64,000 nucleotides of DNA, from assembly GCA_002189035.1 (NCBI GenBank), contig NEEC01000004.1, positions 5,146,001 to 5,210,000 of the forward strand, written 5' to 3'. The translations under genes and the position numbers were made by a program. The stretch comes from Utricularia gibba. Its lineage: Eukaryota > Plantae > Magnoliophyta. The notes beneath the pieces are model-generated. The model made no database searches. It was not told where the DNA came from and saw only the letters and a program-made list of their open reading frames with translations. Of this stretch, positions 37,533 through 47,651 are shown in pieces. Numbering within the stretch: position 1 is the stretch's first letter; the number at the start of each line of letters is the position of its first letter.

Positions 37533-38049
37533 CTTGTTTTCTGAAGAACACCCGGGGGATCGAGATCCCACCGGAGTATCCAATGGATTAGCACTCCGAC
37601 GGTTGATGCTTCTTTTTGTTCTTTTCTCGTGTGTCGAGAACAGGGGAGCCGTGGAGATGGGAATGGAAAATTTTTGTCATGAAAACGGGAGGTAGGCAAT
37701 GTGAGAAGCAAGAACTCCATATAGTATTCCGCCATTGACGGGGTAACAAGGAGTTGCAGAGATTGGGATCACTCTTTTTTCGGTACCCTATTGACCTGCG
37801 GTTTCCGCCATTGACGGAGAACAAGTCTCAAATGGATTAAAGCTTTTGTAGCATATCAAAATTCCACATTGAAAACTATGGAATGCCATAGCCTCAACAG
37901 CGGAGAAAACCTTATCTCACATCGAACCTAGTAACCCAACTATCATCTTCAACCACATAACTCCTCAGCCCACGCTGAAAGTACGGCATTTGAACAACAA
38001 CTTGTGGGAGTCATTGAAATGGAGAGAGAATTCGGTCGGGGAATCGACC

Positions 38050-38599
38050 TGCTCAAGCTAGTAATTTTCGTCGTTCACCTGCTTATCGGAGACGGCTGGT
38101 TCAGTCGCCGTCGAAGAATGCATCGGTGTGTTGAATATTTCCGGTATAAGGTGCTGATCAGACGGCTGATTATACAAAATCATTCTCCAATCGGCGTATG
38201 GATTTACCCCACTTCAAGCCGCGCCATCTCTCCGGAAAGTAGCGTCCATGATCTGTTCCGCGTTGTACCGGGAGGAATCGAAGTTTTTGGCAGCGCGAAC
38301 TCCTCGTAAGTCGATATCAGCGACGTCGTCTGCCTCAGCTGCTTCCTCTGGAGTGCCTGAAATTGAAATTCAGTACTTATTCAATGCAGAATCAAAGGGG
38401 TTTCTCTTTTGATGGGATGCAAGATTCTGACTGAAAGTTCCGAGATAAAGATCTTTGTTACCAGCAAACTTTCGGATTTCAGCTTGCCACCGCCTTCCAT
38501 TTTGACGATATCTTCAGGTAACTGTGATTTCAGCAACAAATATCAGACCTTGTGGCGCCTCTGTAGATTGAAGCTCCCCTTGAGAACCCTCTGCCTTTC
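38050..38599 (-). pseudogene. ANT: AINTEGUMENTA-like AP2 gene remnant (linker plus second AP2 repeat), frameshifted
   Basis: Three exon remnants: 38599-38549 (R)KGRGFSRGASIYRGATR; about 38511-38432 YRQNGRRWQAEIRKFAGNKDLYLGTF; from 38356 STPEEAAEADDVADIDLRGVRAAKNFDSSRYNAEQIM, then frameshift to TLLSGEMAR. No first AP2 repeat found; one intron is only about 37 nt. Confidence 0.8.
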
Positions 38600-39704
38600 C
38601 TGCAAATTTCGCCTGTCATTCAAATGGGAGTTACAAGGTTGAAAGATAATATAACTTCAGCCTTCTTTTTAAGCTTCAAAGATAAAAGACGAATCTTTAC
38701 AGGTAACTAAAGCAAGGTGAAATCTGCATCAAACCTGGTGGCAGTGCTGTCTTCACTGCACACACTGTGCCATCAGATTTGAGAATCAAACAAGGGTACG
38801 AGCATCATCAGCTCCACAGCAAGTTTCAGGAAAAAGGGCAACCAGAGAAGCTACAGAGCTTGAAAAATGGTGAGAACTCCATGTTAGAAGCAGAAAAGGA
38901 GAAGCCTGACAAGTTGTTACTCCTGGAATAAAGCTCTTGTTCTCCATTACCGAACCAGAAGGCAAATTGCCCCCATCAAAGTTCCAAGGATATCAATAGA
39001 ACTAACAACAGGGCAGCTTCGGAGATGGTGATCAAATCAAGCCCATCTTTTCTTCCTTGAAATCGGAAAGCTTACCTTGTTCATGTTGCAGACACAATGA
39101 CATCAAATTTCAAACAAAATCCAGACCACAGAAAACTCCTCAAACTTCTTACTTTTCCACAGTTTAAATATGGTCTATTTAATTATAAAAAATTACATTG
39201 AGTTAGTTCAATTTTAGTATATTTTTTATTTTAAATATAAATTTTAAAAAAAATTAAATTTACGATTAAATCGTTTTAAACCATTAATTATTCATAATAA
39301 AAATCATATTAAAATTGATAGAATTGTGATTGAATTAAAATTGAATCAATTTTCATCGTACATGGTTTTCACAAACGGTTTCTCTTTTGTTTAAGGTTTT
39401 AAAATTCATTTATATTTTTTTGTATTTTACATTTTTGTAAATAATGCGACGCGAACTTTTCTTTATATAGAAAGAAAGGTCAAATAAAGGCGAATACGAT
39501 GACGCGGGCCGTGTCGCAACCCGCAGTCGCGACTCGTGCGGTATTTGATTTATTTAATTTAATAATTCTTGCATTTTGTTTTTTTTTTTTGTGTAAAACC
39601 ATATGAAGGCAAGGTGACACGAAAAAACGTCGACACGTGACACACCTTTGCCTACCTCGTTTGCCTTCTAATCCTTCTCCTCCGACGTCCCGCTGCGTCT
39701 TGTC

Positions 39705-39996
39705 ATGGAGGTGCCGACGATAACACCCCCCGGACGGCACCTCTCCGGCTGCCGATCGCGCGGCGGAGCTGCGGGGGGTCAGGAGGCCCGGGGAGATCGG
39801 ATTGGCGAAGAACAACAAGGAGCTGGTTGCGCGGCGGATGCCTCACGGCGGCGTGAGATGCTGCTTGGATGGTTGTACCTTGACGGCGGCGATGAGGGCG
39901 GCGCAGCCCTATCATATGATGCATCGCGGTAGTACGTTTGTGGTAGTTTTGTCCAGTGAAATCATCGACACACCCCACCTGTCCTCCATCCTCGAG
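39705..39996 (+). other. NAGS: Duplicated, candidate alternative first exon (exon 1a) of NAGS
   Basis: Encodes ...[48 protein letters not shown] followed by a GTAATT donor in phase 0, paralogous to the end of exon 1b. ATG 39705 is one base out of frame; first in-frame ATG is 39838. Confidence 0.75.
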
Positions 39997-40503
39997 GTAA
40001 TTTCCGCCATTTCTTTATTTATTTACATATTTGAAATACTTTAATTTTACTCATTAACAATTTTGCATTAAAAAAGGTAATTAAAATGGATTGAAATAAA
40101 TATGTTGCGTGTTTTATAAATAAAGAATTTTCATTTTATTCCATTTTTGGGATAATATAATTTAATAAGAAAATCCCAAGTCATCAAATAGATATTCCCT
40201 GTCCATTCGTTGTTTTTACAAGAAACGTCCCAGGGACATTTTGGGAAACTATTGATGCGGTGTGCATTTGTAATTAAGTAAAAAGTAGGGGCCTAAAGGC
40301 AATATTCGAAATTATAGTTCAAAAATATCGGGCGGTGCAACACATGTCGGATACTGTGGCCTGCGACAAATGTTGACCAGGAAACAACTTCCCGGTCCAA
40401 AATATACGCGCCTCCTTCCACCGGTCTGCCGCCGGGGCGGATACCTGAATTGGGGTATATATAGCTTTCATCAGGAAGCCGCCTTTTCTCGGGTGCGGAA
40501 CCA

Positions 40504-43481
40504 ATGGCCGCGGTTTTCTCTTACTTTTTTGCACCAACCCACAACAATCTCTACCATAACCCACTATTATTTTCTACTGCCTGTACTGGGAGATCGAGTT
40601 TTGGAAAATTGGGTTTAAAAGGGGGGAGGAAGTGTGTGAAAATTTTCTGTGCTTTGAATGGCAATGGCTCCCGGAAGGAAGTTCGTGTTTTGGGTGACGG
40701 AGGAGGGCGAGTTGAGGAGAGAATTGTTGATAAATATGAGATGTTCGTCGATTTCTTCCGTGAGGCGTGTCCTTATTTCATGGCGCACAGGGGAAGTACC
40801 TTCGTGGTTTTAATATCAGGAGATATTGCTGACAGCCCGCATTTGGAAAATATTCTCATGGCAAGACTTACATTTGGATTTCACTATAGTATAGGCCGAT
40901 TTGAGTGCTTTCGTTGGACACTAGATGGTGGACGCATGATTTCATTTTTAGGATTTTTGGTGCATTATGGAAGTTGATAATTTATTTTTCTGTCGTCTCG
41001 CAGGATATTTCCCTTCTTCATGGACATGGAATCAGGTTTGTCATCGTCCCTGGGACTCACGCGCAAATCGATAGAGCTTTGGCTGAAAAAGGTGAGATTA
41101 ATGGCTTGCTGTTTGATTGATTGTCTCTGGAAAAATGTGCACTCTTGGTTGGATTAAAGCTTCACTACATGATTCATGCGGAATCATTTTTGTATTTGAC
41201 CACGATTTGCATGCAAACATCTATGGCACAGCCGCATTTGTTAATGCATATGTCTTCTAGCATGCATCATATCCGTATCACCTTGTTTGTTCATTCGGCT
41301 TGTATCCTGAATGAACAGGTTGTGAACCGAAGTATGCAGGGAGCTACAGAATTACAGATGCTGAATCTCATAAAGCTGCAGTTGCTGCTGCTGGGTTGAA
41401 TCACTTCATTATCCAGTCCAAGCTTTCTCCTGGGCCTTCTCTAAATGGAACTCGTCGACATGGGAACAATGACCGATGGCATAATGGTGTCAGTGTTGCC
41501 AGCGGAAACTTTCTGGGTGCTAAGGTTGAAAGGCCCCTGCTTTGGTGTATATGCTTACTAACTATGTTTTCTCGTCATTCTAAATCAGATTCTGATCCTC
41601 ATTTTCAGAGAAGAGGGGTAGTGAACGGTGTTGATTATGGATCTACGGGTGAAGTTAAGAAAATAGATGTTCAGCGAATTCGAGAGAACCTTGATCAAGA
41701 TTGCATTGTTCTGCTAAGCAATCTGGGGTACTCAAGTTCCGGAGAATTATTGAATTGCAAGTATGGTATATGACTTTTCATACGTATTTTTGTTGCCACA
41801 TGGAGGGTGGATGTTTACATGGTTATGTCTTTGATCACTCAGATAGTTTGAGGGGGGCGTTTCGTGTAATTAACCTTTTTTTCTTTTGTGGACTCGTCTC
41901 TGATCTTTTCATGCTTCATGACACACTTCCCCTTGCTTGAGTTTATGAATGACGTTTTTCTGTTTCTTGATTTTACAGCACTTACGAAGTTGCTACAGCA
42001 TGTGCCATGGCTCTTGGTGCAGAAAAGCTCATATGCATAATTGATGGGCCAATTCTTGACGAAGATGGCAGGCTTATTCGGTTTTTAACTCTCCAGGATG
42101 CGGACAAACTAATTCGCACAAGAGCCAAGCAAAGCACAGCTGCTGCTAAATATGTGAAAGCTGTTGCTACAGAAGATCTTCCTCATCATGTTTGTGATGA
42201 ATCAAATGGATCAGTCCCATATGCAAAAGAAAATCCTTATACTTGGGCTCCAAGATTTCACAACGGTGTTGGATTTGACAATGGGAATGGATTATGGACA
42301 AGCAAACAAGGATTCGCCATTGGTGGTCAAGAGAGGCTCAGCCGATTAAACGGATACATCTCTGAACTTGCTGCTGCAACGTTCGTCTGCAAGGTTAGCC
42401 TCCACGCATATTGTTTTTACACGTCCTTTTCCATGCAATGGCATGTTGGCCATCTTCTCATCTTCCAGGATGGATCAGTTTTGCTTCTCTGATGCATATT
42501 CTCATTTTTTACTTCCCAAAGTTCTTTACTTATTTGAAAGTATCCCCATGTTCTTATCTTCCTCCAGAGTGGTGTTCAAAGAGTGCATCTGCTGGATGGC
42601 AGCATCAGCGGAGTTCTATTCAAGGAACTCTTTCAGCGAGACGGCGTCGGTACCATGGTGGCAAGGTACGTCTCCTGCTTACCGCCGATCATCCCCAACA
42701 AGCATATCGAAGTTGCAGACATGATGATCTTTACCATCTGTTTCTCAGTGATCTTTACGAAGGCATGCGAATGGCAAGGACCTCCGATGTCGAAGCCATC
42801 AAACAGCTTTTACTACCATTGGAGGAAGCTGGCACACTGATAAGAAGGACTCATGAAGAGGTTTCTTCAGGACACCTGTTAATTGTTTATCTTACAGTTT
42901 CTTGCAAGCGACCACCAATTCTATCCCTGTTTTTGCTGCAGCTCCTTCAAGCCTCAGATTCGTTCATGGTGATGGAGCGAGAAGGCCACGTTATAGCCTG
43001 TGCAGCTCTCTTCCCCTTCTTCTCTGCCAAGTGCGGAGAAGTGGCTGCCATCGCCGTGTCTCCCGAGTGTCGCGGGCAGGGACAGGGAGATAAGTTACTC
43101 GGTATGATACAACACCCCATCATCTGTTTCCTCGGAAAAATGCTTTGGGATCCACCGGCTGACTCTGCCGTTGCCCACTTACAGAATACGTGGAGAAGAA
43201 GGCTTCATCCCTCGGTCTAGAAACGCTGTTCCTTCTAACCACTCGCACCGCCGACTGGTAAGTTTCCGGCATGAGTTTTGGTGCAAGTTTGTGGCGTAAG
43301 CAGCTGATACCATCTTCATATTTTCAGGTTCGTGAGGCGCGGCTTCTCGGAATGTTCCATCGAATCCATACCCGAAGAAAGGCGGAAAAAGATAGACATT
43401 TCCAGGAGATCGAAGTACTATACAAAGAGGCTCTTACCAGACAAGAGCGGAATCCGGCTGGGCTCCGCCGAGGACTACTGA
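40504..43481 (+). CDS. NAGS: N-acetylglutamate synthase (amino-acid acetyltransferase), plastid-targeted
   Basis: Transit-like N-terminus; [26 protein letters not shown]; GC donor at 40861; [19 protein letters not shown]; ASGNFLGAK; [13 protein letters not shown]; RVHLLDG; GNAT domain [21 protein letters not shown]; [10 protein letters not shown]; end ...[26 protein letters not shown]. Confidence 0.95.
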
Positions 43482-44048
43482 CACGCTCCGGCGCCCCCCG
43501 TCTTTTCCTTATGCGGTCAAGTGTAAGAATTATTTCAATATCAATGTTTTTTAATCTTATTTTAATAATATTTTGATCTTAATAAATATCCCCAATTTTG
43601 TAATTTTTTTTATTTTAATCCAAATTTTGGTTTTTTAGTTTAATAATTTCGTAAAGTTTCATTAAATTATTTTTTACAATCTAAAATGAATTAGAAGATA
43701 ATTTATTCAGTAACAATTTTTTATATCAATATAATTTTTACCATTTATATTCATGAATATTAGGATTTTGAATTCAGGATAAAATAATTGTTTTATTAAT
43801 TAGTACCATAAAAATTATAGATAAAAAAATATTATACTAACAATCTTTTAAAAATTAAGGATAATATCAAATGTAATTAAATCCTCCATCGTAATATTTA
43901 AAACAATGACTTGTCTTTCCAACAAAAAAAAAAAACATTTGCAAGACACGGACACGTTTCTCCAGTTGTGGTTGCTTTGGCTGCATGACGGCTTACCGGA
44001 GGCTGACGGGACAAGTCTACCCGGCGGCGGCTAATCTTCAGGGTGGCC

Positions 44049-45218: not shown

Positions 45219-46560
45219 TCAAGAGGATGCTTCTGTAGGAGGCCCCTTCCATTTGAAGTTGTCTGCATAGGACTTGACCTGCAGCAAGTAGTAGAAAAGA
45301 AATGGGGTGACAAGTTAGAATATATTTGGTTCAAATCGAGTGCTCTGGATAGAATGGATCTAACCTTCAACAAGGGTGTGTGGCGTTTCTTGACCTGTAA
45401 GTACAACATTCATAAGCATATCGGAACTTCAATTTTCAAACAAAGGGATAATAATCAGATGAACATTAAGGATCCAAGTTTCTTTTGAACGGGACCAGAG
45501 ATTGATATGATTTATCCTCGTGTGTTTACACACATCAGTGAACCTAGTCGAGTTTGGATTATGGTGATTGCAGATGTTACATAGTGTGCTCCTTATTAGT
45601 CACCAAAATGAAGGCAATCAATGCAGGTAGTATAAGATATACCATGTATTCCCAACCATGGCGTTTGGCAAACGATACTGCCGCTTCTTCACTGTCAAAG
45701 CCTAATGCAGAATCACCAACGTGTGAATAAGGGTCTCCAGTGGAGGTCCAACCCATGAGCGGATTCTCCCATCTATGCATTCCCAATCCGATTCATATGG
45801 ATAACCAAACGAAATGAAAAAGATCATGAGTGAAAGATAGGGGGGAAAAACGTACTTCTGAGTGGACATAAAATTGATTTTCCACTTCCCAACCTTCCCA
45901 GATCCTTGTTGAGAAGCAGTCCTTGCAGGGGAGTAAATCAGGACCTGATTAAGAACCAAGATCATAACCCTAAATTCGTTCCAAACAAGTTTCATGTGGC
46001 AGGAATTCATACTCAAAGAACCCAATAAACAAGCTCATACAACTTTATGATCAGCTATCCACAACGAGACAAGAAAGAAAAACCCCATCTTTAAGAGCCC
46101 TGAATGTATAACCCTAAATTTGGTTTCAACACAAATTTCATATGGCAAGAATTCATAATGGAAGATTCCAATAAGCAAGATTAGGCTACATTTCATCAGA
46201 AATAGAAACAGAAACAACAGCCCTAACTTCTACGAATCATCGCAATACCCCATCTTAAGGATCCGTAAAAGAAAATGTAAAAGTCATGCTCAACCTAACC
46301 AATCTCGGCCAATCAATTTCACAAATTTCAGTATCAAATTGATGAAATTCATCAATTATTCAGCCCAGTAATCTCATTCTCGGAATTATTACCCGCCGCT
46401 GCAGCTGTTCCTTGGGGATGCCGGAGACCATTCCGATCTCCCCAGGCTTGATTTCAACCAGGGAATCCTCTGCAGACGAGAAAGCTCTCGTGAATGGGCT
46501 CAGAGAAGATCGAAAAAACTGCCGCGAATTCCCTGCCAACCGTTGCACAGAGCTCGCCAT
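45219..46560 (-). CDS. NDUFS4: Mitochondrial complex I 18-kDa subunit NDUFS4 (FRO1), 5 exons
   Basis: [10 protein letters not shown] presequence; [16 protein letters not shown] / [25 protein letters not shown] / [15 protein letters not shown]...AKRHGWEY / [10 protein letters not shown] / [14 protein letters not shown]. Confidence 0.96.
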
Positions 46561-46631
46561 CTCCGCGATTCAACCAACTCGTAGCCGACGAGCGTTGGCG
46601 TCTGGCTGACGTAAATTAGAATGTCATATCA

Positions 46632-46919: not shown

Positions 46920-47651
46920 TCGATCAATTCTCGGTTTGTTCTACTACTCCCCTTGGTCTGTCCCTTTGAGCATCTCCATCGCTGGGCGCCCAAATCCCAT
47001 GTGGCACACAAACTTTATCTGTCATTATTATTGGTCCGATCACCAATGTGATACAATAAATGTCCAAAAAAAAGAAGTCTTCATATATTTTATTTCCGCG
47101 TACAAAATCTAATGTTGTTCTAAACCTAATTTATTTTATCTATCTTTCGTTTGTCTTTCGTCAAATTTCTTCCAAGGTAACAAATAGGTTTTTGAATTTC
47201 ATAAAATCTTACCCATAAGTACTTTGAAGATGTGGGTATAGTTAATTTCTTTATTAATGATTATTTTGGAATCATAAGTTATATATTTATTTTTTTAAAA
47301 CCTTAAATTTAATAAAATTGATTATATTTGTCTAATTTGTGTTTGTGAAGTAGTTCTATTAATATTTAAAAATCATTTATATTTTTTTACACTACTAGAA
47401 TTATTTGAAAAACTAAACATGATGTATAATTATTTTTTAGAAATCAAACAATGCATTTTATTTAATTTTTTTCATTTATCATTATTTTCATGCCAAAACT
47501 CCTCAAATTTTATGAATGTTCGTTAATTGATCTGAATTTGCTTACATGAAATTAAGTTGATTTATTTATGTGTTAGTTTGGGATATTTGATGACATTGTT
47601 TATGTATTTATATTGTTTATATATATTTTGCATTTTTTTTATGTAGGTACA

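Follow-up and report, generated by a model that had tools for sequence, protein, structure and literature searches.

Two homologous first exons, very probably mutually exclusive and from an old tandem exon duplication, in the NAGS gene of Utricularia gibba

A 64,000-nucleotide stretch of Utricularia gibba DNA (contig NEEC01000004.1, positions 5,146,001 to 5,210,000 of the forward strand; the window, numbered from its first letter) contains a complete gene for N-acetyl-glutamate synthase (NAGS) on the plus strand (40504-43481, stop codon 43479-43481). Very probably, this gene carries two homologous, mutually exclusive first exons, each with a start of its own, that arose when exon 1 was duplicated in tandem long ago. 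In transcripts started upstream, the GT donor of exon 1a would be used, exon 1b spliced over and exon 1a joined to exon 2; in transcripts started at the proximal site, the GC donor of exon 1b would be used and exon 1b joined to exon 2. The A and B forms made in this way would differ in the presequence and in the first ~40 residues of the folded AAK domain. Choice of the start site would set the ratio of the two enzyme forms, and the forms may differ in arginine feedback, hexamer assembly or organelle import. The parts of the gene were located as follows.

39622..39704, plus strand: minimal 5' leader of exon 1a; RNA contigs begin at 39622 (X3) or 39641 (X1, X2), with 39164-39551 uncovered
39705..39996, plus strand: coding part of exon 1a (type A), 98 codons with two RNA-supported bases added
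39997..41003, plus strand: intron of 1a transcripts, 1007 nt, GT..AG; RNA joint 39994/41002 (cut +2) in X1, X2 and X3
40352..40503, plus strand: longest 5' untranslated part of exon 1b; contigs start at 40352 (X5), 40367 (X1, X2) and 40459 (X3)
40504..40860, plus strand: coding part of exon 1b (type B, the ancestral type), 119 codons
40861..41003, plus strand: intron of 1b transcripts, 143 nt, GC..AG with a non-canonical donor; RNA joint 40859/41003 (movable by up to 2) in X1, X2, X3 and X5
41004..41091, plus strand: shared exon 2, opening DISLLHGHG; acceptor TCTCGCAG directly before GAT at 41004
41319..43481, plus strand: exons 3-10, common to both forms, plus introns, as far as the stop; remaining AAK domain and GNAT acetyltransferase domain
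41319-41524, 41609-41760, 41979-42393 and 42568-42665, plus strand: exons 3-6, junctions present in RNA contigs
42749-42860, 42942-43101, 43185-43257 and 43328 to the stop, plus strand: exons 7-10, junctions present in RNA contigs

Public RNA contigs of the same organism were placed on 38000-43800. X1-X3 came from one study and X5 from another (~3% diverged). The data are assembled contigs, not reads, with rough depths and with ends that are not true 5' ends. Both junctions of the two alternative N-termini proposed in a first-pass annotation of the window were recovered (1a in three runs, 1b in four). The joint 39996>41004 (GT..AG) was present in X1, X2 and X3 at depths of 7.9, 25.7 and 26.5. 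The joint 40860>41004 (GC..AG) was present in X1, X2, X3 and X5 at depths of 18.9, 21.8, 15.2 and 80.1. In X1-X3 the two first exons have contig depths of similar size. The 1a contigs ran from 39622 or 39641 to 39994 and then 31 letters into exon 2. Contigs of both kinds break ~30 letters into exon 2, as a k-mer assembly graph would for two 5' exons with one downstream exon in common. Exons 1a and 1b together appear to account for most NAGS transcripts, their summed depths being 26.8, 47.5, 41.7 and 85.7 (X1, X2, X3, X5) versus 37.5, 54.9, 54.5 and 80.1 for the shared exons. The 1a share of first-exon depth ranged from ~0.07 (X5) to 0.64 (X3); this variation between runs, in rough contig depths, only hints at regulated use.

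The contig starts fall into two separate groups, 39622-39641 and 40352-40459, with an uncovered gap between them; these are contig ends and not cap-based positions. No 1a-to-1b joint was seen in the RNA contigs, which leave 40134-40327 uncovered and show presence, not absence. Exon 1b has no acceptor and would not be expected to be included after exon 1a. The whole of exon 1b and its promoter sit within the 1a-transcript intron (39997-41003). The two TATA-like words earlier suggested as start signals did not fit these positions: the word at 40455 lies inside a transcribed stretch, with 1b contigs starting upstream of it at 40352-40367 (X3 at 40459), and 1a contigs start ~160 bp downstream of the word at 39463. 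The 39622-39704 leader is free of ATG and has a G-box word, CACGTG, at 39634-39639, on the extreme 5' edge of the exon 1a transcripts. The long 1b leaders have an upstream ATG at 40370, opening an 82-codon frame (40370-40618) that overlaps the main ATG at 40504. This upstream ATG could damp translation of the B form from long-leader transcripts.

As assembled, the ATG at 39705 lies outside the NAGS-like frame of exon 1a (39724-39996, last residues SSILE, then GTAATT at 39997), and its own frame stops at 39930. An extra C after 39725 (C run 39726-39731) was present in all three X1-X3 contigs, and an extra G after 39772 (G run 39773-39778) in all four runs. With both RNA bases, the ATG at 39705 reads to 39996 through an unbroken 98 codons, and an in-frame stop lies just upstream of it. 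Without these two bases, exon 1a is not open from its ATG. The X1-X3 contigs match the window without any other mismatch and both sites are homopolymers, so that two consensus errors are the simplest reading, and the missing C and G are most likely two homopolymer errors of the assembly. They would hide the 1a reading frame. Other genes in the assembly may carry similar homopolymer errors. The spliced products are 583 (A) and 604 (B) residues long and identical from exon 2 on.

The ends of exons 1a and 1b are 62-64% identical in amino acids over 33-34 residues (tblastn within the window, E ~1e-10), and both exons end in phase 0 at the same residue, before DISLLHG. Exon 1b has ENILM as its last residues, followed by GCAAGA at 40861, and after its presequence encodes the same helix-strand-helix segment as exon 1a. 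The two exon ends, the GT (39996) and GC (40860) donors, the common phase and the single acceptor at 41004 were all confirmed where the first-pass annotation had put them. Its statement that the rest of the gene is not duplicated and that the 1a donor lies ~500 bp from exon 1b was borne out as well: the 1a donor is 508 bp from the 1b ATG, and no further NAGS-like piece was found elsewhere in the 64 kb. DNA identity between the exons is 50% over 42 codons, with saturated third positions and different codons for most conserved residues, and no similarity was detected by blastn between the 1a and 1b regions. The duplication is considered old because of this loss of DNA-level similarity and these differing codons. 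A recent local copy was ruled out by the absent similarity between the exon regions, and a processed copy (retrocopy) by the fact that the similarity ends exactly at the exon end with a donor directly after it. Third-position GC differs between the two exons of this one gene (0.78 in exon 1a, 0.45 in exon 1b).

The shared part of the gene is nearest to Lamiales NAGS (Paulownia, Rehmannia; ~80% identity). It is 80% identical over 482 residues to the Paulownia and Rehmannia proteins, which carry PF00696, and the AAK domain is assigned by this homology; single window exons scored by Pfam fall short of the cut-offs, being too short. The GNAT domain was matched directly in 42399-43217 by PF00583 (35.3 bits, cut-off 20.7) and PF13508 (31.4 bits, cut-off 27). 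An A-type relative aligns to the Neisseria gonorrhoeae NAGS structure 2r8v with E 9e-33.

Full-length plant NAGS proteins were found by search with a shared exon, their N-termini were inspected, and loci were exon-mapped by tblastn. Two types of exon 1 were distinguished. Type B reads [F/W]-F-R-E-A-W-P-Y and ends in M in asterids; in type A, aliphatic residues precede R-E-A-Q-[P/S/T]-Y and the last residue is E, K or Q. Exon 1b of the window is of type B and exon 1a of type A. A-type proteins were found in Cornus florida (X2), Diospyros lotus (X2), Rhododendron vialii, Escallonia, several Solanaceae including tomato (X1), Ipomoea nil (X2), Gossypium and other Malvaceae, and Xanthoceras. In Camellia fascicularis an A product and a B product stand under one locus tag (ACSBR2_023036). 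In Rehmannia, Rhododendron simsii, Nepenthes, Hibiscus, Acer, Bauhinia and also Xanthoceras, A and then B are fused in one over-long protein model. The genomic order A, B, exon 2 was mapped in Rehmannia, Diospyros, tomato, Camellia, Paulownia and the rosid Xanthoceras. The Paulownia A exon (L010:9164-9283) shares 77.5% identity with exon 1a of the window and is located upstream of the annotated gene; in this species (P. fortunei) L010:8918-9283 is an open, unannotated A-type first exon. The exon ends of A and B are 864 bp apart in the window, which is the most compact case, and 1.1-7.6 kb apart elsewhere.

A second Lamiales NAGS locus (L006:10199-12461, GCA_040286145.1) has the A exon only, with no B exon within 2 kb before exon 2. 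A division of roles between duplicated gene copies would be consistent with this. Magnolia, Tetracentron and Papaver have a single exon 1 of the B kind, and neither the first intron nor the 10 kb upstream contained an A-like exon. The Papaver NAGS gene has a neighbour whose end is only 1.4 kb upstream. The exon-1 duplication therefore most likely arose on the core eudicot stem, a date estimated from one locus per outgroup. Protein word searches with A-type N-termini gave few candidates (21 and 67), among which Brassicaceae were absent. Judged from these comparisons, the two-first-exon layout is ancient, common to core eudicots and not peculiar to the U. gibba genome.

In a tree of the 40-residue segment, 18 A and 27 B sequences separate with support of 100/98. 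Grouping among the A sequences broadly follows plant relationships, and exon 1a of the window falls with the other Lamiales A exons. Over 36 codons, dN/dS of exon 1a was 0.096 against Paulownia A, 0.088 against Rehmannia A and 0.151 against the A exon of L006, and B pairs gave 0.016-0.13; silent sites are near or past saturation in most of these pairs. At ~0.1, the A exon is clearly constrained and under purifying selection. The comparison with other angiosperm loci suggested in the first-pass annotation thus points to a conserved exon 1a and away from a neutrally evolving, dead duplicate.

The donor of the A exon was GT in every case examined. The B donor was GC in all core eudicots examined (the window, Rehmannia, Paulownia, Diospyros, Camellia, tomato and Xanthoceras); among the outgroups it was GC in Tetracentron and GT in Papaver and Magnolia. 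The GC donors were placed at these sites.

Window 40861; L001:12594; L002:12071; L003:11900; L004:17949: GC donor of the B exon
L010:10370; L011:7718; L008:10370: GC donor of the B exon, further loci

The GC donor need not depend on the duplication, since Tetracentron has it with a single exon 1. Transcripts started upstream contain both donors, and if the B donor is weak the A donor would be preferred in them.

The part of the enzyme that is exchanged was identified by alignment. Exon 1a aligns to Escherichia coli ArgA residues 9-47 and, from residue 26, to the N. gonorrhoeae NAGS structure. In both alignments the conserved stretch of exon 1 covers the N-terminal helix, the first strand and the beginning of the following helix. 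Neither type varies at R14, Y19, H23 (E. coli numbering) or the T-F-V of the first strand; both window exons retain P18, and the R...PY signature precedes the first strand. A comparison of 18 A with 26 B sequences gave only two columns without a shared residue, ArgA positions 12 and 17, both of them in the N-terminal helix. Type B has an aromatic residue at position 12 where type A has an aliphatic one; at position 17, B sequences carry W (the window, C) and A sequences Q. Positions 13 (F in B, M or L in A) and 32 (I in B, L in A) are strongly biased. At position 15, exon 1a of the window has A, and nearly all others have E. The arginine site of NAGS lies against the C-terminal portion of this enzyme's N-terminal helix, which moves upon arginine binding and thereby alters the hexamer ring (PMC4490483), in agreement with the earlier statement that this helix contributes to the site. 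E. coli ArgA H15Y and Y19C have been used to abolish arginine feedback (PMC4358701, PMC8674398, PMC6345581). Because the fixed differences map to the N-terminal helix at the arginine site, the A/B swap touches the helix of regulation and assembly. For plants, NAGS activity and its inhibition by arginine are predictions only (PMC4520006).

The presequences also differ in composition. B presequences begin with MAA, contain much Ser/Thr and show, over the first 25 residues, an acidic fraction of 0.008; from composition, they look like classical chloroplast transit peptides. A presequences have more Gly (0.139 versus 0.064 in B), an acidic fraction of 0.043 in the first 25 residues, and share a Cys/Gly cluster ahead of the helix (e.g. 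V-R-C-C...G-G). A V/L-[R/K]-C word in both presequence types presumably resembles a stromal processing site.

Several points weigh against two functional enzyme forms. The evidence for the forms is at the level of DNA and assembled RNA. Support for the 1a junction in X1-X3 comes entirely from one study; in X5 exon 1a was covered over 39731-39902 at a depth of 5.6, and the 1a junction was not among the assembled contigs. In the contigs the first exon is not phased with a full-length mRNA, depths are rough and the ends are not true 5' ends. The 1a frame is broken in the assembled genome, the call of assembly errors resting on the RNA contigs, and the A type changes ~2x faster than B at the protein level (dN 0.12-0.35 versus 0.02-0.27). 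The broken frame from the ATG at 39705, the faster change of the A type and the X5 depths (5.6 for 1a, 80 for 1b) are what would be expected if exon 1a were a decaying partial duplicate, its spliced transcripts being noise or degraded and the enzyme being made from the 1b form only. This is nevertheless highly improbable, because the RNA restores an unbroken 98-codon frame, dN/dS is ~0.1 with saturated silent sites, at least seven genomes of rosids and asterids have retained the A exon, with a GT donor in each, and the depth of 1a equals or exceeds that of 1b in X2 and X3.

Alternatively, the upstream start might be mainly regulatory, by transcription through the 1b promoter or as a leader switch, with the protein difference irrelevant. 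The position of exon 1b and its promoter inside the 1a intron would suit such a role, as would the ATG at 40370 in long 1b leaders with none in the 1a leader, and the 1a share that varies between runs. A regulatory start would not, however, keep 40 enzyme codons under purifying selection across core eudicots or maintain type-specific residues such as Q for W, and the L006 locus retains only the A exon in a gene that is still complete; this explanation is considered improbable. An origin of the 1a-to-exon-2 junction in a different NAGS copy of this genome, or in chimeric assembly, is hardly credible. More than one NAGS locus does occur in Lamiales genomes (L001 and L010 versus L006), but the X1-X3 contigs match 39622-39994 except for the two homopolymer bases and continue into exon 2 of the same locus, and the same exon order is found in seven independent assemblies. 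Two alternative first exons of one gene, both coding for enzyme, remain the preferred explanation.

A wider proposal is more tentative, and we regard it as possible but doubtful. In core eudicots, one gene would supply two NAGS with differing helices, giving distinct arginine set-points or hexamers that do not mix, and the two presequences would lead to different compartments or plastid types. If so, promoter choice would tune entry into arginine synthesis. The proposal could also explain the conflict between a predicted plastid NAGS and the cytosolic NAGS activity reported in soybean cells (cited in PMC2671631).

Around the gene, an NDUS4-family gene lies downstream on the minus strand (45229-46570); it also follows NAGS in Rehmannia and Paulownia, so that the local gene order is conserved. 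The upstream neighbour (38000-39115, minus strand) is a spliced gene with CT..AC introns at 38356-38460 and 38612-38733; X5 RNA has a different junction for it, 38599>38695. Its 5' end is ~500 bp from the start of exon 1a, and the divergent promoter region may be common to both genes. Intergenic spacers have ~17-18% GC (39150-39450, 43500-43950, 47100-47550) versus 40-60% in genes. Genes are a few kb apart, as in a very compact plant genome.

In the arginine pathway NAGS is the first enzyme and a presumed point of feedback control, and the plant enzyme has barely been studied. The swapped segment is the arginine-sensing helix that holds the hexamer ring together. Retention of the first-exon pair across rosids, asterids and Caryophyllales suggests that both forms are needed. 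The result also bears on annotation. Many public gene models are without the A exon (e.g. Paulownia) or fuse A and B into a false protein, and several read through into the intron because the conserved donor after the B exon is GC.

The exon pair was compared with known systems. Isoforms of the same kind had already been annotated in public records (Diospyros lotus NAGS2 X1/X2, tomato N-acetyl-glutamate synthase X1, Cornus florida X2, Ipomoea nil X2, Camellia fascicularis ACSBR2_023036). They have the same two exon-1 types, A upstream of B, with the phase-0 junction to DISLLHG; they are automatic annotations without comment, listed as X1/X2 or as two products per locus tag. In the literature on NAGS first-exon isoforms, start sites and the Arabidopsis gene codes no description was found, subscription journals being mostly outside the scope of this search. 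The first-pass remark that the arrangement is undescribed thus stands, within that scope, for the literature and not for public annotation. The tomato SlNAGS1 paper (PMC2671631) and a review of arginine (PMC4520006) give one product per NAGS gene. Arabidopsis NAGS1 and NAGS2 (PMC4520006, PMC2671631) likewise provide two NAGS forms per plant, but from separate genes; here both come from one gene.

The NAGS exon pair is apparently an undescribed case of alternative first exons that arose by tandem exon duplication. Among plant alternative first exons and starts (survey in PMC2174465, in which NAGS and exon duplication are unmentioned; maize BAM7/BAM2, PMC10400034), start choice leads to two N-termini, as it very probably does in NAGS. 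The NAGS exons differ in being copies of each other and in that each also encodes part of a folded regulatory domain and not only a targeting peptide. With mutually exclusive tandem-duplicated exons the pair has in common that the exons are homologous, of equal phase and, very probably, employed singly, so that part of a domain is exchanged; in NAGS, however, the choice would be set by the transcription start, with no competition between internal splice sites. In the helix of feedback-resistant E. coli ArgA and of N. gonorrhoeae NAGS, to which the swapped plant segment aligns, R14 and Y19 are kept as in the plant types. Whereas the E. coli changes are H15Y and Y19C, the plant types differ at positions 12, 13 and 17 and not at 15 or 19, the exception being exon 1a of the window, with A for E at position 15.

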